DNA from: Schmidtea nova | Lineage: Eukaryota | DNA: 64,000 bases | Assembly: GCA_044892505.1 (NCBI GenBank) | Contig: CM097883.1 | Coordinates: forward strand, 217,620,001 to 217,684,000 | Direction: 5' to 3' | In this document: positions 30,826 to 50,738 of the stretch, piece after piece | How the letters are laid out: every line of letters begins with the position of its first letter | Numbering within the stretch: position 1 is the stretch's first letter | Position numbers and translations under genes: made by a program | Notes under the pieces: generated by a model | The model's input: only the letters and a program-made list of their open reading frames with translations | Databases searched by the model: none | Told to the model about the DNA's origin: nothing

Positions 30826-30862
30826 TGTTGGGTGGTATGGGTGTGTTATAAAAATTATTAAC
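30826..30862 (-). mobile_element. Left stub of family-B LTR split by the Polinton
   Basis: Reverse complement (gttaat aatttttataacacacccataccacccaaca) matches 10815-10845. Confidence 0.7.
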
Positions 30863-31360
30863 AGTAAGAGGGTGTGAGCCCCCCAGCACAGGATGAGTTA
30901 TCGCGCACCGCCGATTGAAACAAAATATTCAAACCCCCCGGGGGGAGTGGGGGGGTAATTTTTTTGTTTTAATTTTTGATTTTTGATTTTTCGTTTTTTT
31001 CACGTTTTTGCACAGTGCAAATCGATTTTTTCAAATTTTCTCTACGCAGTATGGTGGTGCACAATGTGCTGCACATTTCTATATCTAAAACTTTTTCATT
31101 GGATGCGCCAAGTAACCGATTATTGATTTTTTCAGTTTTTTTTACATTTTAGCACAGTGAGAATAAAAATTTTTAAGTTTTCTCAACGTTGTTGGGTAGA
31201 TCACAATGAGCTGCACATTTTTTGTTTTGGAAACTTTTTTATAGGATGTGCGGAAGGCACCTAAAAACACGTGTGAGCCCCCCAGCACAGGATGAGTTAT
31301 CGCGCACCGCCGATTAAAACAAAGAAATTTTAACCCCCCCGGTGGGGAGAGGGGGGTAAA
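30863..31360 (+). repeat. Polinton terminal/subterminal repeat: two tandem copies of TGTGAGCCCCCCAGCACAGGATGAGTTATCGCGCACCGCCG plus C/G-rich tract
   Basis: Copies at 30873 and 31272 (about 400 bp apart); CCCCCCGGGGGG palindrome and G-runs; mirrored at 48450-48945; independent copy at 49796-49874. Confidence 0.9.
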
Positions 31361-31439
31361 AATGTTTTTGTTTTAATCGTCGAATATTGATTTTGAAAAT
31401 TTTTTTTGTTTAAATGAGCACAGAAGGAGAAATAATAAA

Positions 31440-32600
31440 GTTAAGAGAAAACTTCCAAGACAAAAGTTGTAGATCATATCGAGGCGCACATTTTAGTTTA
31501 AAAGACCTTTTATTTTTCTTAATCCTATGTTCCAAACTCGTGTTCCAATGTCTCGTTTAAAGAAATATACGACTTCTAAAAAAGATGTGAGAAAACTTCC
31601 AAGACAAAAGTCGTAGACAATGACGAGACACATTTTATATTTGCAAAATACTTTCATTTTGGTCAACCCAATGTATCGAAATCTTGTTCAAAGTTTCGTT
31701 TAAAAATACATGTAAAACTCATATTGACTTTAAAGTGCAAATAAAGTGCAAACAAATAATTACGTATAACTTTTTATTAAAAGGTGCTACTATATATTTT
31801 CAAGTGCCAATATCTTTTAAAAAGTTCTGCACATTATTTTAAAGTGCAACTATTGATTTCTAAGTGCTAAAATGTGCAAGATTGTCATTTTTGTGCAGAA
31901 ATCAGAGTTTTTCAATGGGTTACTCAGTTTTTTAGGAGACTTTTGTTGCATCAACTTATGGGGGCAATGTGCCCGGTTATTCCCGTCACATTTTTTGTCT
32001 AAAAAATTTAATTTTTTCTAGATTTTTCAAGATTTTTCTTCAAAAAAAAATTACCATAAAATTTTTTCATGGAAATGAGTTTACGAGTCGATTATCGATC
32101 TCCATTAAACTCAAATTCCTAGTAAACTACTTGACCAATTTCAAGATGATGCATATCATTAGACTCTAAAACATGTGCCTCATCTTTTGATCAAAAAATA
32201 TTTTGTAAAAATATCAATTATAAATAGTTTGTTTTTTCCCAGTGACAGAAACATTATATCAAAATAATTTTTACATCGTTAGACTCATAATCAAATGAGC
32301 TTTGAGCTGATATAAAAACTTTGCAAAATTCTATTGATTTTTATTTTTTCACACACTACACTTTTAGTTTTTCATAGGTGCTCTAAACTATTTTCGTGAA
32401 TATTATACATCATTAGACTCGTAAATAAATTCTTTACAAGAATCTATATATATTTTTTGTGTAAATATTGATTTTTCAGTTTTGCACATTTTGCACCTTG
32501 ACTTTTTTACAAGTTTTATAAATAATTTTCAACATATTTTTACATCATTCAACTCGTAATCGTCTATTCTACAAAATCATGTCATTACTTTTATGAAACT
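31440..32600 (+). repeat. Degenerate subterminal direct repeats
   Basis: gagaaaacttccaagacaaaagt x2; aagtgc motif cluster 31730-31880; catcattagactc-type unit x4 at 32114-32560. Confidence 0.75.
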
Positions 32601-32719
32601 ATTTATTTTCAAAATTTTCAATTTTCATTTACTAATTTTAATTATTTTCAAAATATTTTTACATCAATGTATTCAACAATTAAATAATTTGTAAACATGT
32701 ATTGAAACAAACACAATAA

Positions 32720-33074
32720 TTAGTCGAAACACATGTGATTATAGAGTTCATTAACTAAAGTATTAATAGTCTGTTTTCGTTTGTATTCAATGCATTCTTG
32801 ACAATTGAAAGGACAAACAAGTGTCTTGAGTATTTTGGCTTGCTTTTTGTATCCATATAACATTAATTTATAATGATATATAATACGTTCGACATTGATT
32901 CCAGTGGCTTGATAGATTTTGGTACTAGCAAGTTCTGGAGCACAATTTAATATTTCATCCTTAATCTCAGGATAAATCTGAGCAATTTTATTAATAAGGA
33001 CTTCAATCTGAAATGCTAGACAAAATTAAAATAATGAAGTAAAATTTTTTACCAATATCTGAAACTTGAGACAT
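32720..33074 (-). CDS. Hypothetical 105-aa protein, two exons (37-nt intron 33016-33052); left-arm copy
   Basis: ATG TCT CAA GTT TCA GAT ATT G|gt..ag|CA TTT CAG... splices in frame to MSQVSDIAFQIEVLINKIAQIYPEIKDEILNCAPE...CPFNCQECIEYKRK...HMCFD*. Confidence 0.7.
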
Positions 33075-33112
33075 TGTAAAAAAAATGAAAAGCGTGAAAT
33101 ATTTCTCTGTAT

Positions 33113-33562
33113 TTATAGTTTTTGGGAACTAATCAAATTCTTTATATCTTGAACAATTTTATTTACCATCCAATCAAAGTTGAGAGTTTTTATACCAAGT
33201 ATAACTATTTTTCCACTGGAAAATAAATTTATACATAATGGTTTATAATTACAAAGTCTTAAAGCAGGAAATATTTCTGGTTCATATATGCAATTCGCTT
33301 TCTTTGATAGATAATGTAAATTAATTTTTTCTCCAATATCCACATTAACTGTACATGATTGAAGACGAACATCTTTAATATCATAGTGTATGCTTTCGAG
33401 GGGTTTCTTGCAACTCATTATCCTACATTTACCAGATTTAAAAAATATAATTGTATATTTTTCATTTTTATCTATAATCTGTTGGAGTTTCAATTTTGGA
33501 AATCTCATGTTTTGTACAACTTTCATTGGAACTTGTCCTCTATAATTAATATTAACCAACAT
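33113..33562 (-). CDS. Divergent TATA-binding protein (TBP)-like, 149 aa; left-arm copy
   Basis: Two TBP repeats: LVNINYR, MRFP, IIFFKSGKCRIMSCK; LQSCTVN, YEPEIFPALRL, NLFSSGKIVILGIK. Confidence 0.85.
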   Translation of the reverse strand: MLVNINYRGQVPMKVVQNMRFPKLKLQQIIDKNEKYTIIFFKSGKCRIMSCKKPLESIHYDIKDVRLQSCTVNVDIGEKINLHYLSKKANCIYEPEIFPALRLCNYKPLCINLFSSGKIVILGIKTLNFDWMVNKIVQDIKNLISSQKL

Positions 33563-33718
33563 TTATGAAACTTGTTATTATTTAATTGATATGTTTAAAC
33601 AAATATTTTATTAATTATGTTGTTGTTATGCTTTTGGTTTCTATATCATTTATTAAAAACTAAAGACAATAAATTAAAGACACATCTTTTAAAAATTATA
33701 ATTATTATAACAATACAA

Positions 33719-34237
33719 CTAATTATTAACTCTACCGCTTAAGATCTTGCAAACAGGTAAGATGGCAGAGCTTGGAGCTATCTTGTAACCTTGAATACGG
33801 ACGACCAAGTTCCATTTATAGTTTTCTTTGAAATGTATCTGAGTATTTCCTTCAAAAAGCTTTGTTGATGGACCACCGATAAATGCACCATCTTCACCTA
33901 ATAATAGTTGTTTGTTTATTCTACTAAATAATGTTCTAATTGCCTCTCGATCTTCTAGCTCAAAATCTTCTATCCAGTAATTGTAGCTAGTCTTCACTAA
34001 GGGAACCGGATTTACTAGAATAAAATCTATTGGATTTTTTAATAAGATCATCTTGAAATCGTGGTAAACATATTCGGGTTTGAAGATTGAAATTTCTTCT
34101 TCCTTCTTCAAGGTTTCTTCATTAAACTTCATCTTTTTCTTCATCGAATGTTCACTTGTTTCCTTCATCATCAGCTGAAATAATGAAAAAATATATTTGG
34201 CAAACACATACTTTCTCAAATACATACACATCTGCAT
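33719..34237 (-). CDS. Hypothetical protein (up to 172 aa); left-arm copy
   Basis: Open frame with globular beta-rich C-terminal half; candidate 37-nt GT-AG intron near the 5' end; no family recognised. Confidence 0.65.
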   Translation of the reverse strand: MQMCMYLRKYVFAKYIFSLFQLMMKETSEHSMKKKMKFNEETLKKEEEISIFKPEYVYHDFKMILLKNPIDFILVNPVPLVKTSYNYWIEDFELEDREAIRTLFSRINKQLLLGEDGAFIGGPSTKLFEGNTQIHFKENYKWNLVVRIQGYKIAPSSAILPVCKILSGRVNN

Positions 34238-34661
34238 TTTGATTTGTCTATTTTATTCTATCAACCATTCACATGCATGTTATGTGATCAGTTATTGATA
34301 TGTTATTGATCAGTTTGTTCCGCCTGACTTTATGTGATTTAATAACTTAGATGATGACTTTAAATTTTGAGTCAATTTCCTAAGAAACAATAATAAATCT
34401 ACATTAAAAAGAATAATAGAATTTAAATTAAAAAATTAAGATAAATAAGAAAATTTATGACAATAAAATCTTAATTTTATGATAATAAAGACTTTTATGT
34501 ATTTTTTAGGAAAATTGAACTTTTTTAGGAATTTTTGATTTGTTTAAAATTGTTAATTCTTTAATTTGAGATCCTTGTAAACTTTTTGAAATTTGATTAA
34601 AAATACAATGATGTTTAAATAATTACTGTCATTGAAAAGATAAGTTAACAATAAAATTGAA

Positions 34662-35675
34662 ATGAATCCAGATTTAATCTCTAAGTACTTTAAAAAGTTT
34701 GTCAGTTATATTCCAACGGTTTTTGAATCATATGATACATCAAGAGTTATCATTTTGCAATTTGCTCTATCTGGTCTCGATTTGTTAAATCGCATTGATG
34801 ATCTCTCGCAATCAGATAAAAATGAAATAGTTGACTGGATTTATGAGCTGCAAATATTAAATTATCAATCTGGCCGTTTAGAGGGATTTCGAGGTGGATT
34901 TTTCCCGAGTAATTGTCATCTCACAAACCAGATTTACATGTCTGGTCATGTAACGATGAATTATTCGTGTTTAGTTTGTTTGATGATTTTGGGTGATAAT
35001 CTTAGTCGAGTCGATAAAACTGGCATTTTAAAATGTTTTAAAAATTTGCAAAATTCTGAAGATGGCTGTTTTTGTGCGGCTCTTGACTGCCCAGAAGCAG
35101 ACGTGAGATTTATATTTTCTGCTTTAGCTTCATGTGCAATTATAAACGATTTCAGCATAGTAGATGTTAATGCTGTTGTGTCGTTTATTTTGAAATGTCA
35201 AGATTATGATGGTGGGTTTGGTCAGAGACCTCGTGAAGAAAGTCACAGTGGCTCCACCTATTGTGCAATAGCAAGTTTAAAGATTCTGTCAAAATTAGAT
35301 GTTTTGTTCCCTGAAAATTCTAGTAAAAGGAATTTAATGCTTCGGTGGTTAATAAATCGTCAGTACGAAGGACTTCATGGAAGACCGCATAAGGACGACG
35401 ATAGTTGTTATACATTTTGGATAGGAGCCTCATTGAAAATGCTTGGCTATGGACATTTAATAAATTTCCCTTCTTTGTTCGATTTCATTGAGTCTACTTA
35501 TGAAAATCTGGCCGGTGGATTTTGTAAATTGAAGAACTTGGGACATTCATTTGGTGATATCTATGAGATCGTTGTGAAAAATGCCGAAACTCTAGACAAT
35601 GCTATTGATTATTCCGGATTTGAAACGTTGAAAAGGTCTTATCCTTTAAGAATTGCTGACAAGGTCGTAGAATGA
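34662..35675 (+). CDS. PGGT1B: Geranylgeranyltransferase type I beta subunit-like, C-terminally replaced by RNR alpha-derived sequence; left-arm copy
   Basis: YDTSRVIILQFALSGLDLL, GHVTMNYSCL..L.ILGDNLSRVD, EADVRFIFSA, CQDYDGGFGQ...ESHSGSTYCAIASL, GRPHKDDDSCYTFWIGASLKMLG, GGFCK; afterwards DIYEIVVKNAETLDNAIDYSGFETLKRSYPLRIADKVVE (RRM1-like). Confidence 0.9.
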   Translation: MNPDLISKYFKKFVSYIPTVFESYDTSRVIILQFALSGLDLLNRIDDLSQSDKNEIVDWIYELQILNYQSGRLEGFRGGFFPSNCHLTNQIYMSGHVTMNYSCLVCLMILGDNLSRVDKTGILKCFKNLQNSEDGCFCAALDCPEADVRFIFSALASCAIINDFSIVDVNAVVSFILKCQDYDGGFGQRPREESHSGSTYCAIASLKILSKLDVLFPENSSKRNLMLRWLINRQYEGLHGRPHKDDDSCYTFWIGASLKMLGYGHLINFPSLFDFIESTYENLAGGFCKLKNLGHSFGDIYEIVVKNAETLDNAIDYSGFETLKRSYPLRIADKVVE

Positions 35676-35891
35676 CCACAACACAGGTTCGTGAGAGCAG
35701 CTGTTGGAATATACAAGGATGATATTGAAAGTGCAATTGAGACTTTTAACTTAATGTCAGAAAAATGGTTCATACACGCTTCACCCATAGTGTTTAATGC
35801 AGAATTGAGATATGGACAACCTTCCAGTTGTTTTCTACTGATAATGAAAGATGACTGCCTTTCTAAATCGAAGCAACAACATGCATGTTAG
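35532..35891 (+). pseudogene. RRM1: Ribonucleotide reductase large subunit fragment; left-arm copy
   Basis: Same frame across one TGA (35673-35675): [46 protein letters not shown]...[12 protein letters not shown]; truncated both sides. Confidence 0.9.
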
Positions 35892-35955
35892 TATATTACA
35901 ACATCCAATCAGTATTATACATAAACATGTGTGTATTTCATAATATTTTGCATTA

Positions 35956-36408
35956 ATGTCTTTTATGGAAGATTATATAGCAACAATTATTCATGAATTG
36001 CTTTTTGGAAGCGAAGATAAAGTAGTTCAATGTTTGAATTGTATGTTACTTGAAGCTGAGTATCATTGTACTATTGATTTCTCTCCAATATTAAAACCAA
36101 GAACAGATATTGAAAAGGAGAAAGCATTCAAAAATGTCTTTGACTCATTATTTGAAGATGGTATCCGTTGGTCTAAAGTTATTACAATTTTTTTGTACAT
36201 TCGAAAAATTCTTATTTTATGTCCAACTGAACATCAGAAATATTTGAAATGGTCAGTACAAGAAATTCTCAAAATTTATCCATGGATCAAAGAAAACGGA
36301 GACTGGGAATATGTTATTAAATTACAATTAAAATATGGTTTTAATTTGATTATTAAATGTTTAAGTATTTGTATTATATATTTAATAAAATTTTATCAAC
36401 TTTATTAA
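35956..36408 (+). CDS. Bcl-2 family protein, 150 aa; left-arm copy
   Basis: BH1-like FKNVFDSLFEDGIRWSKVITIFLY, BH2-like PWIKENGDWEYV, hydrophobic C-terminal tail. Confidence 0.82.
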   Translation: MSFMEDYIATIIHELLFGSEDKVVQCLNCMLLEAEYHCTIDFSPILKPRTDIEKEKAFKNVFDSLFEDGIRWSKVITIFLYIRKILILCPTEHQKYLKWSVQEILKIYPWIKENGDWEYVIKLQLKYGFNLIIKCLSICIIYLIKFYQLY

Positions 36409-36411
36409 TAA

Positions 36412-36885
36412 TTTTTAAACACAAAACATTTATTTAACAATTTACCAAACTTTATTCTTGTAATATTTCAATCGGAAGCTCAATATAATAGTTCATATGC
36501 AGAAACGAGTTCAAAATTTAACCATTTTAGTATAACTTCAATAACTTTGTCGAAACACTCTGATTATCGTGAAACATATACGCAAGATTTTGACAAAGAT
36601 AATTATGCTGTAACTTATATGCAATCTATTGTACGAAATATGGGTTATTTAGACAAGAATTTAAATTGTGGAATAGATCTTGTAGACTTTAAAAGTAAAT
36701 ACCCCTTCTTTACATTTGTGTTGGCTCCCAACTGTGATTGGAATCAATCACAGTTACCTCAAAATGGAAATTTAAGACTTGATATTAAATTCAACAAGGC
36801 TCTTACATCTCCTGCATATGTAATAATTTATGGTGTTTTTGAGAGTGAAATCCAGATCTCCTCAAATCGAACTATTTTAGTGTAA
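36412..36885 (+). pseudogene. 3' part of Polinton major capsid protein (double jelly-roll), 5'-truncated at the duplication junction
   Basis: LFNNLPNFILVIFQSEAQYNSSY...KFNHFSI...YPFFTFVLAP...QNGNLRLDIKFNKALTSPAYVIIYGVFESEIQISSNRTILV; no start codon. Confidence 0.8.
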
Positions 36886-36916
36886 ACAAAGTTGTTGATT
36901 AATATTATTTCGAAAT

Positions 36917-37302
36917 ATGGAGTAAGTTCGTTTTGTTACTATTAATTTTACTAATGTAGTTCTATTCAGCTTAATAGAATTGCAACAAATTTATTTGAAT
37001 ATAATTTTTTGGGAGTTTATCCATTAGATAAAATTCCTTTTCTAAACGATAACAAAGCCATCATTGTCAATACACAATCATCAAGTCTTGAAGGAGAACA
37101 TTGGCTAGCCATCTATATGACCAGAGGAAAGATTCATGTGTTTGACCCTATGGGTTATTATTATCCATCATTCTTGGTATCGAAGCTCTCAAAATTATCA
37201 AAACCAATTGTTTACAACAGAAATAGATATCAAGATCTATTTACAATTATTTGCGGACAATATTGTATTGTTTGGTTATATTATATGTTTAATAAATGTT
37301 AA
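36917..37302 (+). CDS. Adenain-like cysteine protease (Polinton PRO), join(36917..36921,36960..37302), 115 aa
   Basis: ATG GA|gtaagt...taatgtag|T TCT gives MDSIQLNRIATNLFEYNFLGVYPLDKIP...GEHWLA...FDPMG...QDLFTIICGQYC (His, Asp, Gln, Cys catalytic set). Confidence 0.9.
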
Positions 37303-37425
37303 TTATTTGGTGTATGACTTTTATTTTCAAAAATAACTAAAATAACTCGTTTGTTTTTATAACTTTTAATAAAATAACATTTAAACAACTTTAGCAATAA
37401 CAACAACAACAAGAATGTAAAATTG

Positions 37426-40400
37426 TTATTCCGATAAATATTGGTCTGAATCGCTTGATACAAAACTTGGGGAATGCTCCGTTGATGATTGTTGTTGTTG
37501 TTGGTCAGGAAAGTCACTTTTAGTATTAATATTATTATTTATAACACTTTCCTCAGAAATTACTACAGAATAATGCCCATAAGCTAGACTCTTGTTCCTC
37601 CCCACCCAAACCCTTTTATCATCGTTGTTAGTTAATGCGACTTTATTTGTTTTAAATGTTAACAGCTGATGATTTTTAGTACCGATTCTAATTTGTGGGA
37701 CTTTTGGAATTATCATTCCATTATAACAGTCCAAATATGACTGATGATTTATTATAGTCTGTCCCAACCGAATACCTTTTGCTTTTAACGTTTGTTTCTT
37801 TGGACCTCCCAAGAGACTATATAACTTTGGACGAAGGAAAACCCATTCTTTATATTTGATTCCTTTACTTTCGTCCTTAAATTTTCCCACAACTGATGCC
37901 AAATCTCTATTGAATAATGGATGGGAGGAATCATAGTTTGAAGTGTCCAAGAGTTTGTCCTTTATCATTTCTCTTAATAAAACTTCCAGGTTTAAATTCT
38001 TTACCTCCAAAAAGAATGAGTCAGTGTCTCCAGCTACAATATTAATTTCACAATTGAATTGTTCCCTATACTTTCGCAAATCATTATATTGCAGTTGGTA
38101 CATTCTTAGTTTGGATAAATCCAAGACTGTTTGACCAATATATGTTGGTCTATCCAAACATACAATTTCCTGATTCAACAGAGCAGCTATTAGGTTGTCA
38201 GCAATTTTGAAGCTTTTCTTGAACCCAGGTATAGATGCATATGTCACCATTTTCTTCTGGGTATTACATAGACGTAAATTTATTCGTTTCTTCAAATTTT
38301 CCACCGTTTTGCCATAGAAGCTATTGTTGATTAGCTTATAATAATCTTTATCTAATTCTGTCAAGGAAGCAGCTCGTAATTTTGTATTGTTGTCGATATA
38401 ATTTTTAAATATTTGTCCTTGTTTGAATTTAATTGCTCTATGAACCTTTGTTACTTGAACACCCAACATCAGGAAAAACTTCAACAATCTCCAATGAATC
38501 ACATAATTCTTCTTTGAATAATGTGTTAATAAAAGTTTAGGAACCTTTGATTCAGAGGGGCACATTTTCTCAGCTGATGCAGGCAAATCATCTATTAAAT
38601 CGTGAATCTCATCAGGAATTTCCAAATCCACCTCCATTGTAAATCCGTAATTGAGTTTTTCCAGCTCCAATGTTTGACAATCTTCCAAGACTTTATCTAG
38701 ATTGTCATGAACCCATTTGAATTCTCCGCATGGCAGACTTTGACAGAGTGCCCAACCATATAGATTATTTATGTCTATATAAAGCAAATCAGTATTTTCA
38801 TCAGTTTTCACATGATGTTTGTTGACAAATGTAAGTCCCCCTCTAATTCCACCTTCATAATAATTGTACATTTCATAATCTGTCAACAATTCAATAGGAC
38901 TATCCAGTGTTAAAAGTCCAGAAGCCCAAGACATTCCCGGTATTCCAAAGAAATTCAAAGGTTCCAAACCATTATGTGCTAATGATTTGGCTCGAAATTG
39001 TTCAAAATAGTCTGCCAATAGATATACGTCTAACTTCATGTATATCATCATGTAATCCAACAATGTCTCGCAGCTATTCTCTCTCCATATATTCTTGGCT
39101 TTTTCATATTCGTCTTCAGTCACTCCAGTCCATATTGGAGGCAATTCAAAAGTTTCTTGAAGTATTTCCAAACTCTTTGCGAAGTCAAATGGAAATATAC
39201 CCTTTGAGTCTACAATTGATGCTTGGAATACCGAATTTGTTATGGGTAAGCTTATCAAAGTCTTCACTGCTCCAGCTAAAGATTCATTTATAAACTGGTA
39301 TGAATCTATGAATTTTATTGTCATTTTCTTGTAATGAGCGATAAGTGTGAGAAATTTCTCACATGTTGTAGGAATACAACTTATGCTCCAATTACGAAAT
39401 TTATTTATTCCGTATTTTAAAATATGATGCATATCATAACCCTTGAGGTTATGAAATACAACTGGTAGGGTTCTTCTAATTCTTCGTGAGAGATTGCATC
39501 TATTGCAAGCTGCTCCTAAGTACTTTCCACTAAAATGGTTGTGATCTCGAACCAAATTATTAGGGGTTTTGTGACATATGTAACAGGAAGTTGCTCTATT
39601 AAATGAAATCTGTTGATCACGATTAATCACCATTAATGTATTACTATGTTCCACGTAATATTGTAATACTTTAGTCTGTGAAATTTCCTCCACTTTCTTA
39701 AGAAAATCAAAGACACAGTCATGTCCAATAAATTGATGATATTCTTTACTTCCTGAATAGTTATTTACCAATAAAAGTCCAGCTGAAATTGGTAAATGTT
39801 TTTGGTAGTGTTGCTCATCCTCTGGTAAGACTGATTCAAAATCCGCATAGATGACATATGGCGGTAATCAATTTTGACCAATCTATATTTGTTTGTAGGA
39901 GTTATGTATAATGTGGTTCCTATTTGATTTTTTTACATAGATCTACATGTCTGTCAAATGCTAATGGTCTTCGAAAACCGTTAAGACAATTAGGGCACCA
40001 TTTGCATTGAATTCTCGTCGGACAATCTTCGTTTTCATGAAAATTCATCAGCCTATTTAGATTTGGAACAGCTGTGTAGTGATAATTTCCATTTTCTTCC
40101 AACAAAAGCAAATATATTGGGTTAATATCTTTTACTTTTGTTTTATGAATAATATCTAGATGTGGATGTTTCATAAGCACATCATCTTCCACCGAGAAAT
40201 TATCTGCCTCGTACGATAATACGTTAATAGCTATCCCGGGATTTTGGGCTTCAAATTTCCGAATATCTTTCAGTTTTGTAGGCACTTTTTCCCTATCGAA
40301 CCTTAGTTCTGATAAGTATTGTGTATATTGTGACGGTCTATTTCTGTTGCTGTTTATTACATCATATTTTAATAATGATAAAACACTATAAATAAAACAT

Positions 40401-41569
40401 AGGTTATCATTATTCCTTACATTGATCAGTTTGCCTTTGAGATTTATTGGAGTATTAATAAATCTATGTCCTGGCAATCTACTTATCTCTGCATACTTTG
40501 TTACTTTAAAGTTGATTTCCAATATACGGTTCAAATGCCAACTACTTCCCATCGTAGTTCTTATTGTTATTTTTTCATTTAGGGATTGTATACCCTCCTC
40601 CAGAAAGTTTGGTGACATCTCCACAGCACGATTTGAGAGTCTTGCAGTCCTGATCTCTCCATCTTTAACGAATTCTGCGTTTATACCAAATTGTACCTTA
40701 CCTTTTTTCAATTCGGATAGACAAACTTTTAGTTTTGTTTTTAAAGAAACAGGAATAATTATTTCTTGTACATTATAACCTGAAATGTCCAAGGAAATAA
40801 TTTGATGTGATCTATATAAGTCACATTCAATTTCGGGTTCCTTATCTATTCCTGTTCCAGTTTGAATAAATGTTTCATCCATTAAAGAGTAGCTATCTGC
40901 ATACTCTGTAGATTCACTTTCGGTATAAAAATCTGTTATCTCATCCACTAATTCAAAATTTAGCCAATCTTCTAGAATTGGTTCCTCTTGATTTCCAACA
41001 TTTTCTTCTTCTTCTTCTTCTTCTTGTCCATCTTGTCCATCTTCTGCTTCGGAATCTGTGATTAAAATACAATCTTCTCCTCGGTTTCCTGAATTGTCCA
41101 TTTCTTGAATCACCTCTTCAGAATCTTCTTCTTCTTCGGAATCGATGATTAAAATATAATCTTGTTGTTGTTGTTGGTGAATTTCTTCTCCTTGGTGTCC
41201 CATATCCTCCATTTCTTGAATCGCCTCTTCAGAATGTTGTTTGGAATTGGCAACATCATTTGTTTCTTGAATCGATACTTCTTCTTGTTGTTGTTGTTGT
41301 CATTGTTGTTGATTTGTTTCTTCACAAACGTTGATCTGATCCAAATCAACGTTGACATTATTTTCTAAACGCCGACATATTTTATTATTATTATATATAA
41401 TAATTGGAGCTTTTCTTTTAAAAAGCTTCTTTTTACTTTCATTAAATAGGGTTAAGTGTCGCATATGATTTTTATAAAAGGTAAGGTATGGGTCGGAACT
41501 TAGAGTCTGGCAAAATGGACATATATAGTATATTTCCTGGAAATATGTTATTTTATAATAAAGTTCCAT
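37426..41569 (-). pseudogene. polB: Protein-primed family B DNA polymerase (pPolB) with endonuclease VII-like insert, disrupted
   Basis: YADFES, RDHNHFSGKYLGAACNRCNL, VFHNLKGYD, FIDSY, KGIFP, GIRGG, YIDINNLYGWAL, KLINNSFYGK, GDTDS, GKFKDE, LRPKLYS; ORFs 41300-41569 and 39920-41212 are in frame across one TGA; frameshifts between 39920 and 39867. Confidence 0.95.
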
Positions 41570-42103
41570 TATTTGGTGACAGTTGGAACTGTGTATTGCA
41601 TTGTTATAATACCTCGGATATAATAAACCTTAATGTTATTTTAAAATTAATTTAATTTATATTCTAAATATTTATATATATTTTTTTATGAGAGAACATT
41701 AGTAATATAAACTTCCTAGAAAAAAAAATAATAGTTATTTTGTGTATCTATTAAAAGTTTTTAATCTAAAGATTACTGTAATAATTACTTAAAATAACTA
41801 TTATTTTGGATCTATTTTTCATATTTATATGAATATATAATTCCTTGTTGTTAGTGTACATAAATGAATAAAAATTTTATGAATTTACATAGGTATTCAC
41901 GTTGTTAGTATACATAGCAATAAAAATTTATTTATAATTTTTTTTAAATTAGCAATTTTATTTTTGTTAAAAACAATATTTTCCATACTTGTATGATTTT
42001 AATGTTTAAAAAAAAATAAAACAATAATTTTTTTTAAAATTTGATATTCTAATTAATAATATAATATTTTAAAATAATTTTTGTGTCAAAAAACAATAAT
42101 TTT

Positions 42104-42545
42104 TGTTGTTAGTGTTCCTAACAACAAATTTTATACATTAAATATTAATAATTCCCATAATGTTAAGACTATAGATCAAATTATCTTTAAATAAGTACAC
42201 AATATTTCGGCCCAGCTTTTATCATAGATGAAACAAAAGATTATTATGACATTAAAATTATAAAAATAATTTTTTATATATTACTAAAGGTGAATAAATT
42301 TGTTGTTAGGTACTATTGTTGTTAGTGTTCCTAACAACTAATTTTATACATTAAATATTAATAATTTCCCATAATGTTAAGACTAGATCAAATTATTTTT
42401 AAATAAGTACACAATATTTTGACATAGCCTTTATCATGGGTGAAACAAAAGATTATAATGACATTAAATATTATAAAAATAATTTTTAAAAATTACTGAA
42501 GATGAATAAATTTTGTTGTTAGTGTCCCTAACAACAAATTTTATT
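42104..42545 (-). repeat. About 200-bp tandem repeat (2 units plus start of a third) containing Penelope-type pseudo-LTR with degenerate hammerhead core
   Basis: ttgttgttagtgt(t/c)cctaacaac hairpin at 42104, 42317, 42514; each unit carries ataattcccataatgttaagactatagatc...gtacacaatattt. Confidence 0.8.
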
Positions 42546-43123
42546 CAACTATTATTAAATTAAAAATAATATAAAAATAATTTACTATTTTAGATGATTA
42601 TATTTTGTTAACTTCACTATCAACACTGATAGTTAACTTCAACAAAATACAATCATCTAAAATCTGAAATCTTAAATAAAAAAAAATTTACATTTATCCT
42701 TTGAATTAAAATTTCAAGCATTCTGAAATTTTTAAAAAAAAAGTAATAAAAACTTATATTTGGTTAATATATTAATATTACCATTTGTTTCGTAGTATTA
42801 TCTTTTGAATTGACTTGCTTCTTTTGTCTCTGCATCATTTCTGTAAAGAATAATTATAAAAAATGAAATAAAAATATAAAATAAACCTTACTTCTTTGAA
42901 TAAATTTCTTATTATAAATTTAAATAGATTTTTAAAATTAAATTTAAATAGTGAATTAAAACAAACAGTTTATAATTAGTTATCGTTAATAGGCAACTAA
43001 ACAATTATTGTTATTAAGCAACTAGAATATTCTAGAATATTCTAGAATGAATTTATGTAACTAAGATTTCATAAACAACTATAAACGATAACTCATTGTC
43101 GATAATTATTATTTATATAGATC

Positions 43124-43341
43124 ATGGATGATATAGATGGTAACCTTTGAATATTTGAAACAAAATTTATTATAAAGATTTGTTTTTAGAAATTATATAC
43201 AAAGAGGAACAAATAGAACCTGAAGAAAGTATAATTGATGATTCTAATGATATATTTGAGTTATCAAGTCAAGAACCAATTATAATTTTGCCGAGTAAAA
43301 ATACGGAAACTTTGTTCCAAGATATTAAGAATTTAAAGTAG
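43124..43341 (+). CDS. Small acidic 55-aa protein, join(43124..43139,43190..43341)
   Basis: ATG GAT GAT ATA GAT G|gtaacc...ttttag|AA ATT (50-nt intron) gives MDDIDEIIYKEEQIEPEESIIDDSNDIFELSSQEPIIILPSKNTETLFQDIKNLK*. Confidence 0.55.
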
Positions 43342-43400
43342 AAAACTGCATGTTTTTGTCAAGATTATTTGTTAAATAAATGTTTTGTGTTTAAAAATTA

Positions 43401-43853
43401 TTAATAAAGTTGATAAAATTTTATTAAATATATAATACAAATACTTAAACATTTAATAATCAAATTAAAACCATATTTTAATTGTAATTTAATAACATAT
43501 TCCCAGTCTCCGTTTTCTTTGATCCATGGATAAATTTTGAGAATTTCTTGTACTGACCATTTCAAATATTTCTGATGTTCAGTTGGACATAAAATAAGAA
43601 TTTTTCGAATGTACAAAAAAATTGTAATAACTTTAGACCAACGGATACCATCTTCAAATAATGAGTCAAAGACATTTTTGAATGCTTTCTCCTTTTCAAT
43701 ATCTGTTCTTGGTTTTAATATTGGAGAGAAATCAATAGTACAATGATACTCAGCTTCAAGTAACATACAATTCAAACATTGAACTACTTTATCTTCGCTT
43801 CCAAAAAGCAATTCATGAATAATTGTTGCTATATAATCTTCCATAAAAGACAT
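43401..43853 (-). CDS. Bcl-2 family protein; right-arm copy
   Basis: Identical translation to 35956-36408. Confidence 0.82.
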   Translation of the reverse strand: MSFMEDYIATIIHELLFGSEDKVVQCLNCMLLEAEYHCTIDFSPILKPRTDIEKEKAFKNVFDSLFEDGIRWSKVITIFLYIRKILILCPTEHQKYLKWSVQEILKIYPWIKENGDWEYVIKLQLKYGFNLIIKCLSICIIYLIKFYQLY

Positions 43854-43917
43854 TAATGCAAAATATTATGAAATACACACATGTTTATGTATAATACTGA
43901 TTGGATGTTGTAATATA

Positions 43918-44277
43918 CTAACATGCATGTTGTTGCTTCGATTTAGAAAGGCAGTCATCTTTCATTATCAGTAGAAAACAACTGGAAGGTTGTCCATATC
44001 TCAATTCTGCATTAAACACTATGGGTGAAGCGTGTATGAACCATTTTTCTGACATTAAGTTAAAAGTCTCAATTGCACTTTCAATATCATCCTTGTATAT
44101 TCCAACAGCTGCTCTCACGAACCTGTGTTGTGGTCATTCTACGACCTTGTCAGCAATTCTTAAAGGATAAGACCTTTTCAACGTTTCAAATCCGGAATAA
44201 TCAATAGCATTGTCTAGAGTTTCGGCATTTTTCACAACGATCTCATAGATATCACCAAATGAATGTCCCAAGTTCTT
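43918..44277 (-). pseudogene. RRM1: RNR large subunit fragment; right-arm copy
   Basis: Mirror of 35532-35891. Confidence 0.9.
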
Positions 44278-45147
44278 CAATTTACAAAATCCACCGGCCA
44301 GATTTTCATAAGTAGACTCAATGAAATCGAACAAAGAAGGGAAATTTAATAAATGTCCATAGCCAAGCATTTTCAATGAGGCTCCTATCCAAAATGTATA
44401 ACAACTATCGTCGTCCTTATGCGGTCTTCCATGAAGTCCTTCGTACTGACGATTTATTAACCACCGAAGCATTAAATTCCTTTTACTAGAATTTTCAGGG
44501 AACAAAACATCTAATTTTGACAGAATCTTTAAACTTGCTATTGCACAATAGGTGGAGCCACTGTGACTTTCTTCACGAGGTCTCTGACCAAACCCACCAT
44601 CATAATCTTGACATTTCAAAATAAACGACACAACAGCATTAACATCTACTATGCTGAAATCGTTTATAATTGCACATGAAGCTAAAGCAGAAAATATAAA
44701 TCTCACGTCTGCTTCTGGGCAGTCAAGAGCCGCACAAAAACAGCCATCTTCAGAATTTTGCAAATTTTTAAAACATTTTAAAATGCCAGTTTTATCGACT
44801 CGACTAAGATTATCACCCAAAATCATCAAACAAACTAAACACGAATAATTCATCGTTACATGACCAGACATGTAAATCTGGTTTGTGAGATGACAATTAC
44901 TCGGGAAAAATCCACCTCGAAATCCCTCTAAACGGCCAGATTGATAATTTAATATTTGCAGCTCATAAATCCAGTCAACTATTTCATTTTTATCTGATTG
45001 CGAGAGATCATCAATGCGATTTAACAAATCGAGACCAGATAGAGCAAATTGCAAAATGATAACTCTTGATGTATCATATGATTCAAAAACCGTTGGAATA
45101 TAACTGACAAACTTTTTAAAGTACTTAGAGATTAAATCTGGATTCAT
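44134..45147 (-). CDS. PGGT1B: GGTase-I beta/RNR chimera; right-arm copy
   Basis: Mirror of 34662-35675 with one I/L difference. Confidence 0.9.
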   Translation of the reverse strand: MNPDLISKYFKKFVSYIPTVFESYDTSRVIILQFALSGLDLLNRIDDLSQSDKNEIVDWIYELQILNYQSGRLEGFRGGFFPSNCHLTNQIYMSGHVTMNYSCLVCLMILGDNLSRVDKTGILKCFKNLQNSEDGCFCAALDCPEADVRFIFSALASCAIINDFSIVDVNAVVSFILKCQDYDGGFGQRPREESHSGSTYCAIASLKILSKLDVLFPENSSKRNLMLRWLINRQYEGLHGRPHKDDDSCYTFWIGASLKMLGYGHLLNFPSLFDFIESTYENLAGGFCKLKNLGHSFGDIYEIVVKNAETLDNAIDYSGFETLKRSYPLRIADKVVE

Positions 45148-45571
45148 TTCAATTTTATTGTTAACTTATCTTTTCAATGACAGTAATTATTTAAACATCA
45201 TTGTATTTTTAATCAAATTTCAAAAAGTTTACAAGGATCTCAAATTAAAGAATTAACAATTTTAAACAAATCAAAAATTCCTAAAAAAGTTCAATTTTCC
45301 TAAAAAATACATAAAAGTCTTTATTATCATAAAATTAAGATTTTATTGTCATAAATTTTCTTATTTATCTTAATTTTTTAATTTAAATTCTATTATTCTT
45401 TTTAATGTAGATTTATTATTGTTTCTTAGGAAATTGACTCAAAATTTAAAGTCATCATCTAAGTTATTAAATCACATAAAGTCAGGCGGAACAAACTGAT
45501 CAATAACATATCAATAACTGATCACATAACATGCATGTGAATGGTTGATAGAATAAAATAGACAAATCAAA

Positions 45572-46090
45572 ATGCAGATGTGTATGTATTTGAGAAAGTA
45601 TGTGTTTGCCAAATATATTTTTTCATTATTTCAGCTGATGATGAAGGAAACAAGTGAACATTCGATGAAGAAAAAGATGAAGTTTAATGAAGAAACCTTG
45701 AAGAAGGAAGAAGAAATTTCAATCTTCAAACCCGAATATGTTTACCACGATTTCAAGATGATCTTATTAAAAAATCCAATAGATTTTATTCTAGTAAATC
45801 CGGTTCCCTTAGTGAAGACTAGCTACAATTACTGGATAGAAGATTTTGAGCTAGAAGATCGAGAGGCAATTAGAACATTATTTAGTAGAATAAACAAACA
45901 ACTATTATTAGGTGAAGATGGTGCATTTATCGGTGGTCCATCAACAAAGCTTTTTGAAGGAAATACTCAGATACATTTCAAAGAAAACTATAAATGGAAC
46001 TTGGTCGTCCGTATTCAAGGTTACAAGATAGCTCCAAGCTCTGCCATCTTACCTGTTTGCAAGATCTTAAGCGGTAGAGTTAATAATTAG
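45572..46090 (+). CDS. Hypothetical protein; right-arm copy
   Basis: Mirror of 33719-34237; candidate intron 45598-45634. Confidence 0.65.
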   Translation: MQMCMYLRKYVFAKYIFSLFQLMMKETSEHSMKKKMKFNEETLKKEEEISIFKPEYVYHDFKMILLKNPIDFILVNPVPLVKTSYNYWIEDFELEDREAIRTLFSRINKQLLLGEDGAFIGGPSTKLFEGNTQIHFKENYKWNLVVRIQGYKIAPSSAILPVCKILSGRVNN

Positions 46091-46246
46091 TTGTATTGTT
46101 ATAATAATTATAATTTTTAAAAGATGTGTCTTTAATTTATTGTCTTTAGTTTTTAATAAATGATATAGAAACCAAAAGCATAACAACAACATAATTAATA
46201 AAATATTTGTTTAAACATATCAATTAAATAATAACAAGTTTCATAA

Positions 46247-46696
46247 ATGTTGGTTAATATTAATTATAGAGGACAAGTTCCAATGAAAGTTGTACAAAAC
46301 ATGAGATTTCCAAAATTGAAACTCCAACAGATTATAGATAAAAATGAAAAATATACAATTATATTTTTTAAATCTGGTAAATGTAGGATAATGAGTTGCA
46401 AGAAACCCCTCGAAAGCATACACTATGATATTAAAGATGTTCGTCTTCAATCATGTACAGTTAATGTGGATATTGGAGAAAAAATTAATTTACATTATCT
46501 ATCAAAGAAAGCGAATTGCATATATGAACCAGAAATATTTCCTGCTTTAAGACTTTGTAATTATAAACCATTATGTATAAATTTATTTTCCAGTGGAAAA
46601 ATAGTTATACTTGGTATAAAAACTCTCAACTTTGATTGGATGGTAAATAAAATTGTTCAAGATATAAAGAATTTGATTAGTTCCCAAAAACTATAA
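46247..46696 (+). CDS. Divergent TBP-like protein; right-arm copy
   Basis: Mirror of 33113-33562. Confidence 0.85.
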   Translation: MLVNINYRGQVPMKVVQNMRFPKLKLQQIIDKNEKYTIIFFKSGKCRIMSCKKPLESIHYDIKDVRLQSCTVNVDIGEKINLHYLSKKANCIYEPEIFPALRLCNYKPLCINLFSSGKIVILGIKTLNFDWMVNKIVQDIKNLISSQKL

Positions 46697-46734
46697 ATAC
46701 AGAGAAATATTTCACGCTTTTCATTTTTTTTACA

Positions 46735-47089
46735 ATGTCTCAAGTTTCAGATATTGGTAAAAAATTTTACTTCATTATTTTAATTTTGTCTAGCATTTCA
46801 GATTGAAGTCCTTATTAATAAAATTGCTCAGATTTATCCTGAGATTAAGGATGAAATATTAAATTGTGCTCCAGAACTTGCTAGTACCAAAATCTATCAA
46901 GCCACTGGAATCAATGTCGAACGTATTATATATCATTATAAATTAATGTTATATGGATACAAAAAGCAAGCCAAAATACTCAAGACACTTGTTTGTCCTT
47001 TCAATTGTCAAGAATGCATTGAATACAAACGAAAACAGACTATTAATACTTTAGTTAATGAACTCTATAATCACATGTGTTTCGACTAA
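46735..47089 (+). CDS. Hypothetical 105-aa spliced protein; right-arm copy, join(46735..46756,46794..47089)
   Basis: 37-nt GT-AG intron; 318 nt coding, in frame. Confidence 0.7.
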
Positions 47090-49795
47090 TTATTGTGTTT
47101 GTTTCAATACATGTTTACAAATTATTTAATTGTTGAATACATTGATGTAAAAATATTTTGAAAATAATTAAAATTAGTAAATGAAAATTGAAAATTTTGA
47201 AAATAAATAGTTTCATAAAAGTAATGACATGATTTTGTAGAATAGACGATTACGAGTTGAATGATGTAAAAATATGTTGAAAATTATTTATAAAACTTGT
47301 AAAAAAGTCAAGGTGCAAAATGTGCAAAACTGAAAAATCAATATTTACACAAAAAATATATATAGATTCTTGTAAAGAATTTATTTACGAGTCTAATGAT
47401 GTATAATATTCACGAAAATAGTTTAGAGCACCTATGAAAAACTAAAAGTGTAGTGTGTGAAAAAATAAAAATCAATAGAATTTTGCAAAGTTTTTATATC
47501 AGCTCAAAGCTCATTTGATTATGAGTCTAACGATGTAAAAATTATTTTGATATAATGTTTCTGTCACTGGGAAAAAACAAACTATTTATAATTGATATTT
47601 TTACAAAATATTTTTTGATCAAAAGATGAGGCACATGTTTTAGAGTCTAATGATATGCATCATCTTGAAATTGGTCAAGTAGTTTACTAGGAATTTGAGT
47701 TTAATGGAGATCGATAATCGACTCGTAAACTCATTTCCATGAAAAAATTTTATGGTAATTTTTTTTTGAAGAAAAATCTTGAAAAATCTAGAAAAAATTA
47801 AATTTTTTAGACAAAAAATGTGACGGGAATAACCGGGCACATTGCCCCCATAAGTTGATGCAACAAAAGTCTCCTAAAAAACTGAGTAACCCATTGAAAA
47901 ACTCTGATTTCTGCACAAAAATGACAATCTTGCACATTTTAGCACTTAGAAATCAATAGTTGCACTTTAAAATAATGTGCAGAACTTTTTAAAACATATT
48001 GGCACTTGAAAATATATAGTAGCACCTTTTAATAAAAAGTTATACGTAATTATTTGTTTGCACTTTATTTGCACTTTAAAGTCAATATGAGTTTTACATG
48101 TATTTTTAAACGAAACTTTGAACAAGATTTCGATACATTGGGTTGACCAAAATGAAAGTATTTTGCAAATATAAAATGTGTCTCGTCATTGTCTACGACT
48201 TTTGTCTTGGAAGTTTTCTCACATCTTTTTTAGAAGTCGTATATTTCTTTAAACGAGACATTGGAACACGAGTTTGGAACATAGGATTAAGAAAAATAAA
48301 AGGTCTTTTAAACTAAAATGTGCGCCTCGATATGATCTACAACTTTTGTCTTGGAAGTTTTCTCTTAACTTTATTATTTCTCCTTCTGTGCTCATTTAAA
48401 CAAAAAAAATTTTCAAAATCAATATTCGACGATTAAAACAAAAACATTTTTACCCCCCTCTCCCCACCGGGGGGGTTAAAATTTCTTTGTTTTAATCGGC
48501 GGTGCGCGATAACTCATCCTGTGCTGGGGGGCTCACACGTGTTTTTAGGTGCCTTCCGCACATCCTATAAAAAAGTTTCCAAAACAAAAAATGTGCAGCT
48601 CATTGTGATCTACCCAACAACGTTGAGAAAACTTAAAAATTTTTATTCTCACTGTGCTAAAATGTAAAAAAAACTGAAAAAATCAATAATCGGTTACTTG
48701 GCGCATCCAATGAAAAAGTTTTAGATATAGAAATGTGCAGCACATTGTGCACCACCATACTGCGTAGAGAAAATTTGAAAAAATCGATTTGCACTGTGCA
48801 AAAACGTGAAAAAAACGAAAAATCAAAAATCAAAAATTAAAACAAAAAAATTACCCCCCACTCCCCCCGGGGGGTTTGAATATTTTGTTTCAATCGGCGG
48901 TGCGCGATAACTCATCCTGTGCTGGGGGGCTCACACCCTCTTACTGTTAATAATTTTTATAACACACCCATACCACCCAACACTATAAATTTGGATCCGA
49001 GGAGATAATGCTAGAATCTTAACACTTATGTATAAATTGCTAGTAGTTCTTTCCTTGTTATGAAATACCGTCTTTGACACTTACTCATAGTTTTGACACA
49101 TAACATAGTACTCTTAACTTGCCTTCTTGCATTTGTGACAAGATAGCCCCAATGCTATTATGTGATGCATCTTTGTCTAAAAAATTATTGTCCTTTCTTG
49201 CATGGTAATTCCAACAATGGTAGGGTTGACAATAACCGCTTTAGCTCATAGAACGCTACTTTTCTGTCCTCATTCCACTGGAAACATCTTTCATTTTTTA
49301 GCTTCGCACTCAATTTCTCTAAAGTCTCTGCATACATTTTAATAAAAAGTCTGTAGTAATTGCAAAATCCCAAAAATGACTGCAACTCTTTTTACGTGCT
49401 GGAATTTCCCATGAACTGAAACTTTTGATTTACTGTGGATTTATTTTAACACCTTACTTATTTATGATATGTCTTAGATAGCTAACCTCTATTTAAAAAA
49501 ACATATTGTCTCTATTGCTTTCTTGTCCTTTATTTTTTCATCTTTCGTGAGTTTATTCAATGTGCCCTTTGATTCATTAAAAAACTCGTTCCTTTTTTCT
49601 AAATATCCCAAGCCGGTCTCTGTATGCAGAGTCTTCGAACCTCCCTCTTACATGCATTCTTTACTAATAAATACCATTTCTTGCCTTATACTACGTAGTC
49701 ACTTATCACAATTTCACGATCTGCCACCCTCGATCTTTCTCCATCAAATATATAAATCTCATTAAAATCATCAATTTTCTCCCTACGATCATTAA

Positions 49796-49874
49796 CCGGG
49801 GGGTTTGAATATTTTGTTTTAATCGGCGGTACGCGATAACTCATCCTGTGCTGGGGGGCTCACATCCCCCTACT
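49796..49874 (-). repeat. True right terminal inverted repeat of the Polinton (last 79 bp)
   Basis: Differs from left TIR at several positions (e.g. ggcggtacgcg vs ggcggtgcgcg), ends in TACT followed by TSD. Confidence 0.85.
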
Positions 49875-50738
49875 ATTAACGATTTCTAGGGGTGAATACC
49901 ATCCACTCCACAACATAAATATCAATCTGCCGCACAGGTGTACCCATAGTTATTCCCCAAGTAACTATGTTTTTACTATACAGTGGCAAGAATCTAGTGA
50001 GCAGGTGAGCTCAGTTGCCGAAACTACTCCTCACTACATTCTCTCTTTCAGGTTCTTGTTACCGATAGAATGACTTATGTAACAGCTTACTTTTCGGTCC
50101 TATCACATGACTACATCTCAATTATCGATCACCCTTCGTCATCAAGCATCTACCTTTATTCATTCCGAAAAACTATATTTCAATTTATAAAATATTTCTA
50201 TCTACTTTTATTCACCTAAAAGAATTCGCCAAAATGATGAATACTCATTTGTAATCCCCTTTCCTCCCGCCCAAATTTGGTTCAAAGTCGCCGCATCGCC
50301 CAACTCCCGAAGGAGTCAGGGCTAGAGGTCAATCCGCCCCGTGGTCGTAACACCACCAGATCGCACCTTAATGATTTTACCCCCAGATATTAGGAAGGTT
50401 TACCGCAAATGCATAGAACAACATTTTACTTCAAAAATCTTATTATAAACTACAAAATTAATTACAACAAAACTACGATTAACCTAATCAAATCAAATAG
50501 CTTTTAAAAATGAACATGACAAAAATCAAATAACCATTATAAACTAACAATGAAAAACATGACAAAACAAAATATACTCATCCACGCGACCGATTGACGA
50601 AAACGAAATTAATGAATAATCAATTCTATCTAACTTTAACTAACTAACTAACTACTACCCAATTGTGATTTTTAGCGTCTATTTATACTAAATGTACTGA
50701 CGCTCACATATGTTATTATTTAAATAATTATTTTAACA
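49875..50738 (-). mobile_element. Remainder of family-B LTR split by the Polinton
   Basis: Reverse complement aligns with 9163-9240 and 10330-10815. Confidence 0.7.

Follow-up and report, generated by a model that had tools for sequence, protein, structure and literature searches.

The question raised by positions 30863-49874 of a 64,000-nucleotide (nt) stretch of the Schmidtea nova genome (GenBank assembly GCA_044892505.1, contig CM097883.1, positions 217,620,001 to 217,684,000 of the forward strand; the whole stretch is referred to below as the window) is whether a Polinton-like element with an unusual set of genes represents a working virus lineage. A first-pass annotation, made from the sequence without database searches, described the block of open reading frames (ORFs) inside its left end as a host-manipulation cassette, in which TATA-binding protein (TBP), GGTase-I beta, ribonucleotide reductase (RNR) and Bcl-2 modules were assembled by a mid-size DNA virus. 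In our analysis the locus is probably something less functional: an old, defective endogenous adintovirus-like Polinton/Maverick, nested in a decayed long terminal repeat (LTR) retrotransposon of an AT-rich animal genome, which underwent an inverted duplication after its integration and carries a cargo block of mixed origin. The coordinates of all features are collected in Table 1.

The limits of the element are well defined. The sequence AGTA starts at position 30863 and TACT closes at 49874 (AGTA when the other strand is read from 49874), and both motifs, together with the 6-bp target-site duplication (TSD) outside them, were read directly where they had first been annotated. The two ends (~78-84 nt) are 93% identical in inverted orientation, and the chance of a 6/6 match between the TSD copies at the local base composition is ~5e-4. 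Elsewhere in the window, a paralogous copy of the flanking repeat (10431-11028) aligns with the left flank as far as position 10817 of the copy and with the right flank from position 10809 onward. The flanks are contiguous in this paralogue; the element is therefore one bona fide insertion of 19,012 bp, accompanied by a 6-bp target duplication. The candidate explanation that the right flank is unrelated sequence preceded by a chance TSD is ruled out by the same empty-site paralogue. AG...CT terminal inverted repeats (TIRs), a 6-bp TSD and an empty site are thus all present, as in a Polinton/Maverick. A perfect 12-nt palindrome, CCCCCCGGGGGG, is located at 30934-30945 and within each of the other terminal repeat units.

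The ORF list of the element is mirror-symmetric, and its left and right parts proved to be copies of each other. Segments 30011-36440 and 43369-49797 align in inverted orientation over 6430 nt with 99.94% identity (three substitutions and one homopolymer indel), so that the accessory block (32720-36408) is present twice, its second copy occupying 43401-47089 in the opposite orientation; the single cassette of the first-pass annotation had overlooked this. The left arm extends 852 nt beyond the left terminus, into the retrotransposon flank. Read inward from the right end of the element, the order is 77 nt of the original terminal repeat, the inverted host flank, a second full terminal unit and the remainder of the left arm. 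The junction of the right terminal remnant with the duplicated flank shares two nucleotides (GG), and the 0-2 bases shared at all junctions fit a replication template switch or end-joining. Two distinct junctions and a unique spacer of 6.9 kb separate the arms, and the three substitutions are spread along them; the sole indel is a difference in the length of a G-run just past the palindrome CCCCCCGGGGGG. The inner end of the duplication (36412-36440) is situated inside the frame that runs into a supposed capsid fragment, ~30 nt past the stop codon of the Bcl-2-like gene.

From this arrangement we infer that, after integration, an inverted copy of the leftmost 5.6 kb of the element and the adjoining 852 nt of host flank took the place of the right part of the element; this would have doubled the accessory block and replaced what lay to the right of position 43368. 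Because the left arm includes host flank, the duplication must either postdate integration or be an artefact of assembly. The same two possibilities follow from sequence divergence: the true termini differ by 7% and the arms by 0.05%, and therefore the duplication is far younger than the insertion unless it was created during assembly.

An assembly artefact is the alternative to which we give most weight, while considering it unlikely. A false inverted join, or a collapsed or duplicated haplotype, would leave the real locus with a single cassette and with another, perhaps more complete, right half. Such an error would account for arms 99.94% identical over 6.4 kb in an element whose true termini have diverged by 7%, and one of the four differences between the arms is a homopolymer length, typical of consensus error. 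The window also contains four runs of N, indicative of a scaffolded assembly, and AT-rich, repeat-rich genomes are difficult to assemble. However, a fold-back read is expected to produce one junction and no spacer, whereas the two junctions, the spacer and the dispersed substitutions seen here contradict a simple artefact of that kind. Moreover, the 77-nt right terminus and the adjoining TSD copy are still in place.

We consider the duplication of an integrated element the better explanation, and the genes found in the unique part indicate that this element is defective. A homologue search with the largest piece of its protein-primed DNA polymerase B (pPolB) gene revealed 561 relatives in ENA, JGI and Logan assemblies, the best of them 63% identical; these proteins are ~1100-1300 amino acids (aa) long and most contain PF03175 and/or PF02945. 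Three collinear pieces in two frames (37564-41569) cover residues 1-1228 of a 1242-aa relative. The gene is considered broken because full-length relatives match collinearly to pieces in two reading frames; it is the only pPolB gene within the window. Direct Pfam searches of the pieces at E<=10 gave an endonuclease-VII-like motif and no PF03175 match, and PDB sequence searches with both large pieces gave no matches, so the family assignment is based on the homologue search. Through its relatives the product is predicted to belong to the large PF03175 plus endonuclease-VII family, and a polymerase of the Polinton/Maverick type is recognised in this way, in the form of a broken gene. The pPolB of the first-pass annotation is thus upheld as to its family, without a direct PF03175 match.

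The other core genes are represented less completely. The adenain assigned at first passes the Pfam threshold: the longer open frame matches PF00770 (4e-5; 23.8 bits against a cut-off of 21.3) over profile positions 1-56 of 179, i.e. the N-terminal third, and the ORF is short. It aligns weakly to adenovirus protease chains over the His, acidic and Cys motif regions. The label "capsid C-terminus" given to 36547-36885 could not be confirmed. The enclosing frame (36412-36885) had no match in Pfam or NCBIfam, the search with its poor single-sequence AlphaFold model (predicted local distance difference test, pLDDT, 48) was blank as well, and PDB sequences were not searched for this ORF; a double or single jelly-roll capsid was accordingly not recognised in the fragment by Pfam, NCBIfam or fold search. 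The Pfam searches of the element's ORFs detected neither an rve integrase domain nor a packaging ATPase domain; remnants in an advanced state of decay could escape such searches.

A tandem pair of a repeat resembling miniature inverted-repeat transposable elements (MITEs), with a period of 212 nt and 90% identity between its units, is located inside the element at 42103-42522, and the same repeat is found at four further sites of the window. The members of this palindromic family occupy 2711-2957, 3965-4120, 5436-5515, 13228-13413 and 42103-42522. With its pPolB broken, its integrase, ATPase and recognisable capsid gene not found, and host MITE-like repeats inside it, the element is defective. 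It entered the genome once, with a 6-bp target duplication, and later lost, or never kept, the integrase, the ATPase and a recognisable capsid gene; the MITE-like repeats landed in it afterwards. This copy cannot serve, as was first proposed, as evidence of a working virus lineage: core genes were not found, the polymerase is broken and a third of the element is secondarily duplicated sequence, part of it from the host flank.

Between the left terminus and the core genes lies a block that probably represents a Maverick-style cargo region of mixed origin, and the origin of each ORF was considered separately. The TBP-like ORF gives a significant match to PF00352 (2e-15; 56.6 bits against a cut-off of 22.9) over one repeat. 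A full HMMER scan of 1.84 billion representatives yielded 748 matches, of which 97 cluster representatives had E<1e-10. The top ~90 relatives, ~140-175 aa in length, align with it from end to end at 40-50% identity (best 49%); they come from JGI and ENA metagenomes and from Logan, and are annotated as TBP by JGI. In an alignment of 31 members, the copy from the window retains all 10 invariant columns. Membership in this collinear ~150-aa family rules out that the ORF is a fragment of a host TBP, and the encoded protein is a member of a distinct short TBP-like family. One relative is encoded on a contig of 16,200 nt and a cluster of pPolB relatives on contigs of ~10.9-16.3 kb, which is suggestive and not evidence of linkage.

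The resemblance of this protein to known TBPs is confined to its C-terminal part. Searched as a single sequence, it matched TBPs in the PDB with E-values down to 3e-14, and the family profile matched solved TBPs at 2e-21, only via positions ~62-150, corresponding to one repeat. Of the two tandem repeats that form the TBP saddle, PF00352 recognised one (residues ~62-145); the N-terminal ~60 aa do not align to a repeat and have just an F-x-SGK-type motif in common with it. The protein therefore resembles cellular TBPs and the TBP-like proteins of large DNA viruses in the C-terminal ~85 residues that match a TBP repeat (family profile E ~1e-21), whereas the cellular TBP core consists of two full repeats and in the ~150-aa protein of the window HMMER sees one repeat preceded by a ~60-aa N-terminal part. 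As a member of a widespread family of non-cellular type, it would be expected to act in transcription initiation at TATA-like promoters.

The Bcl-2-like ORF matches PF00452 across the BH1-BH2 fold region by a thin margin (1.4e-7; 32.4 bits against a cut-off of 31.4) and TIGR00865 of NCBIfam at 2e-6. It also aligns to chains of Bcl-2 (6v4m) and Bcl-xL in the PDB with E-values of 1e-6 to 1e-4, again over the BH1-BH2 region (residues 52-123), and a hydrophobic C-terminal tail was noted by eye. No close homologue was found in a word-based search. The ORF is divergent but complete, and a compact Bcl-2-fold protein with a membrane anchor, if correctly assigned to this family, would hold off the apoptosis of infected cells.

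Two further cargo ORFs would remain without an assigned function. The 101-codon frame, which was searched alone, had no Pfam or PDB match; upstream of it, inspection by eye suggested an ATG codon followed by a short candidate GT..AG intron, which no tool predicted. The 172-codon ORF had no Pfam or NCBIfam match, its sole PDB match was a kinesin-associated protein at E=0.1, and its single-sequence AlphaFold2 model was unusable (pLDDT 31). Foldseek searches of BFVD with the models of this ORF and of the supposed capsid fragment returned only noise (E>0.3). The NCBIfam scan gave nothing beyond the TBP and Bcl-2 matches, and an exact-sequence look-up found none of the proteins of the window in the protein collection.

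The intact TBP-like and Bcl-2-like ORFs are plausibly viral accessory genes. It could be argued instead that no part of the block is viral, and that host genes or pseudogenes entered the element after its integration by recombination or nested insertions. The GGTase/RNR chimera described below is clearly derived from the host, the region is repeat-rich and recombining, the element itself has been rearranged at least once, and BCL2-like and BIR motifs also occur in planarian Burro retroelements (PMC6431247), which points to a circulation of such domains among host repeats. This explanation is nevertheless improbable in our view: the TBP-like ORF is closest to collinear metagenome proteins of ~150 aa, with much lower scores for cellular two-repeat TBPs; no close cellular relative of the Bcl-2-like ORF was found; and the ORFs are intronless, compact and placed between a terminus and the core genes, which is the cargo position of Mavericks.

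The remaining gene of the block is of a different kind. Its prenyltransferase part matches PF00432 at 7e-79 and, among PDB chains, GGTase-I beta at 6e-66 against 1e-38 for GGTase-II beta, and so has the alpha-alpha toroid of a GGTase-I beta. The homologue search with this ORF gave only cellular-type GGTase-I beta proteins, the best named match being a protein of the flatworm Macrostomum (46%). Over 209 shared columns, the part is 89% identical to protein P0002 (UniParc UPI000605E308) and 80% to protein P0001, and its identity to the first 300 residues of P0001 is 77%. In an alignment with the rat GGTase-I beta chain (377 aa) it covers residues 27-312; the ~65 C-terminal residues that are missing occur nowhere else in the window; the family alignment likewise reveals the loss of a conserved H-[TSA]-Y column block. 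The third zinc ligand of rat GGTase-I beta lies within the region corresponding to the lost C-terminus. The alignment thus stops short of a complete catalytic subunit.

The RNR piece, which follows in frame, is shorter still. It matches PF00317 at 8e-9 over profile positions 32-75 and contains one in-frame stop; ~62 residues align to positions ~167-228 of human RRM1 at ~61% identity. A class I RNR large subunit comprises an ATP cone, an all-alpha domain and a ten-stranded barrel with catalytic cysteines, and only a partial all-alpha N domain is seen here, in ~100 of ~800 residues. Judged by their sequences, neither the GGTase nor the RNR part can be a functional enzyme: the chimera would be unable to prenylate or to reduce ribonucleotides, because the former is truncated and the latter is both short and interrupted by a stop.

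The structure of the chimera gives an indication of its origin. A 52-residue insert distinguishes P0002 from both the cargo copy and P0001, and the similarity between P0002 and the cargo copy stops at the exact residue where the latter switches to RNR-like sequence. P0002 carries the insert at residues ~31-82, and at both ends this protein bears no relation to the family, a pattern expected of a gene model that reads through introns; the insert therefore likely marks exon edges of the cellular gene. The simplest reading would be that the fusion point and the insert both correspond to exon edges and that the chimera was derived from spliced RNA. Its surroundings showed neither a poly(A) tract nor flanking direct repeats. 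It may thus be regarded as a passenger formed from spliced host messages, in which GGTase-I beta would have been joined in frame, at an apparent exon edge, to a short piece of RNR1. Lineage-specific changes number 8 in the GGTase part and 10 in P0002, and the GGTase part has a single change at otherwise invariant columns.

A more speculative proposal, for which we see little probability, combines two suppositions: that an adintovirus-like lineage infecting flatworms has, as a conserved pair of accessory proteins, the short TBP-like one (~150 aa, one and a half repeats) and the compact Bcl-2-like one, and that the truncated GGTase-I beta, whose frame is still open, is kept as a catalytically dead decoy binding the shared prenyltransferase alpha subunit. 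If true, such a decoy would constitute an undescribed viral route of interference with the prenylation of Rho-family proteins.

The original proposal of a virus lineage with a working host-manipulation cassette of TBP, GGTase-I beta, RNR and Bcl-2 modules appears very improbable. Much of the observation behind it stands: an accessory block does lie next to one terminus of an element of Polinton/adintovirus type, all four domains were matched in Pfam, the ORFs are tightly packed within the termini, and the intact TBP-like ORF (2e-15) and the Bcl-2-like ORF (1e-7, above the cut-off by 1 bit) are as described. The TBP-like family is also widespread, and the prenyltransferase frame is open and as conserved as its cellular homologue. 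What fails is the assembly of prenylation and dNTP modules, the first of which is truncated and the second both short and interrupted by a stop. GGTase-I beta ends at rat residue 312, with the remainder absent from the window, the RNR piece lacks the catalytic part, and both belong to one in-frame chimera with signs of spliced-RNA origin rather than to two working modules. Furthermore, the prenyltransferase search gave cellular-type proteins only, the Bcl-2-like search gave nothing and the element that carries them is defective. As for the view that the 5.6-kb arms are native long TIRs of a virus with the cassette at both ends, as in poxviruses, it is scarcely tenable: long TIRs do occur in linear dsDNA viruses and plasmids, and near-identical arms resemble TIRs homogenised by replication, but the right arm holds 852 nt of left-flank host sequence between two terminal units, which rules out native giant TIRs, and the TSD and the empty-site paralogue match the outer 77-nt terminus and not the inner one.

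Several observations weigh against a decayed, secondarily duplicated Maverick with mixed cargo. To the near-identity of the arms, discussed above, may be added that the negative results for integrase and ATPase come from ORF-wise Pfam searches, which badly decayed remnants could escape. For the Bcl-2-like ORF, close relatives could not be detected, and it passes the Pfam threshold by just 1 bit. Changes are no more numerous in the GGTase part than in a cellular homologue, so that this part could be very recent or still constrained, and describing the cargo region as typical of the lineage would be an argument by analogy. 

Adintoviruses are reported to carry homologues of Bcl2 and IAP, and TBP-like genes have been annotated in related midsize linear dsDNA viruses (PMC8502044). 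The element shares with adintoviruses and animal Polintons, as described by Starrett et al. 2021 (PMC8502044), a protein-primed PolB, an adenain-like protease, TIRs, short target duplications and accessory genes of the Bcl2 type; it differs from them in that integrase, ATPase and capsid genes were not found, pPolB is broken and a third of the copy is duplicated. Nematode Mavericks have a cargo region of 2-5 kb beside the left TIR, with host-derived genes that vary between elements (Widen et al., 10.1101/2022.07.12.499685). The position of the cargo between TIR and core genes is the same here, whereas in nematodes the cargo consists of intron-bearing WASP proteases or KRMA kinases; the ORFs of the window are intronless, the host-derived one is a truncated two-gene chimera, and no fusogen was seen. 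In view of these precedents for Bcl2/IAP and TBP genes (PMC8502044) and for TIR-side cargo (10.1101/2022.07.12.499685), the combination of genes is less unprecedented in Polintons than the first-pass annotation supposed. 

Planarian genomes provide a further parallel. Burro, a group of giant Gypsy-like retroelements, carries BIR and BCL2-like motifs (Grohme et al. 2018, reviewed in PMC6431247). Like the present element, it is a selfish element of planarian type with apoptosis-regulator motifs; Burro, however, is an LTR retrotransposon whose giant polyprotein contains the motifs, whereas here a separate small Bcl-2-like gene is found in a DNA element, and the two are likened by description only. 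Mavericks/Polintons are abundant and piRNA-targeted in low-GC planarian genomes (PMC8532177; 10.64898/2025.12.11.693146; 10.1101/2025.04.19.649669). The low GC of the window, the Gypsy-rich environment of the element and the presence of a Maverick would agree with a triclad planarian as host. 

The chimera has its own counterparts among mobile elements. Gene fragments are captured by Pack-MULEs and Helitrons, and spliced host genes by DNA viruses. The likeness lies in intronless, partial host coding sequences of two genes fused into one frame. Pack-MULEs are mentioned in the review cited above (PMC6431247). The accessory block is a new instance of a known arrangement, and particular to it are the two-gene host-fragment chimera and the secondary inverted duplication.

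Table 1. Features of the Polinton/Maverick-like element and of its flanks (positions are those of the window).
Feature	Position	Strand	Second copy	Evidence and remarks
Whole Polinton/Maverick-like element	30863-49874			19,012 bp, including a 6,429-bp secondary inverted copy; termini, terminal repeat, TSD, paralogous uninterrupted site
Paralogous copy of the flanking repeat, insertion site uninterrupted	10431-11028	-		Alignment to both flanks
Left flank, decayed LTR retrotransposon interrupted by the element	28942-30862	+		Pfam and translation: zinc-knuckle gag, aspartic protease, RNase-H-like end
TSD, left copy (ATTAAC)	30857-30862			Read directly
TSD, right copy (ATTAAC)	49875-49880			Read directly; identical to left copy
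Left terminal repeat unit	30863-30941	+		93% identity with right terminal remnant over 84 nt; contains 12-nt palindrome CCCCCCGGGGGG
Second, subterminal copy of terminal repeat unit	31271-31394	+		85% identity to 30872-30990
Original right terminal repeat, 77-nt remnant	49798-49874	-		Truncated by the inverted duplication
Left (original) arm of the duplication	30011-36440	+		852 nt of host flank, followed by the element's leftmost 5.6 kb
Right (derived) arm of the duplication	43369-49797	-		Second copies of all cassette genes and flank fragment
Open frame, 101 codons	32720-33025	-	46784-47089 (+)	No in-frame start until last 47 codons
Short TBP-like gene, 149 codons, intact	33113-33562	-	46247-46696 (+)	Pfam TBP, 2e-15
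ORF, 172 codons	33719-34237	-	45572-46090 (+)	
Chimeric gene: GGTase-I beta without C-terminus (34662-35558) and RNR large-subunit fragment (~35559-35861)	34662-35891	+	43918-45147 (-)	In-frame fusion
Bcl-2-like gene, 150 codons, intact	35956-36408	+	43401-43853 (-)	Pfam, TIGR00865, PDB
Open frame first labelled capsid C-terminus (36547-36885)	36412-36885	+		Identity not established
Adenain-like (Peptidase C5) cysteine protease	36955-37302	+		PF00770; shorter than family profile
pPolB gene, broken	37426-41569	-		One in-frame stop and at least one frameshift; homologue search
AT-rich (19% GC) non-coding stretch	41570-43368			Tandem pair of host MITE-like repeat at 42103-42522

The GC content of the window varies from 21 to 42% in 2-kb windows. 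A complete 5S rRNA gene (27937-28055, plus strand; Rfam RF00001, 63 bits, E 6e-11) precedes the gag-like ORF of the host retroelement by ~0.9 kb. An uninterrupted ORF of 1170 codons (16199-19711, minus strand) encodes a protein with DUF4550 (PF15084, 7e-22); it is unusually long for an intronless frame in AT-rich sequence, and its exact sequence is absent from the protein collection. Between 52000 and 56000, T strongly outnumbers A on the plus strand (AT skew -0.38 to -0.44), and a zinc-knuckle ORF is present at 53897-54079 (minus strand); a minus-strand, A-rich retroelement probably occupies the region. Another mobile element may be represented by the region of ORF 60405-61190 (minus strand), which contains DUF7047 and an RVT_3 (RNase-H-like) domain; the neighbouring ORFs 59419-59868 and 61484-62155 have no matches.

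If the interpretation given here is correct, the locus adds one more decayed Maverick to a genome group already rich in Mavericks. It would also illustrate cleanly how an inverted duplication that follows integration can mimic giant TIRs and mislead annotation. A cargo region next to a TIR, known to date from nematode Mavericks, would occur in a flatworm-type element too, mixing long-held genes of virus type with a fresh chimera of host messages. Finally, Polinton-like viruses may commonly carry, as an accessory gene, a member of the sizeable and barely characterised metagenome family of ~150-aa TBP-like proteins.

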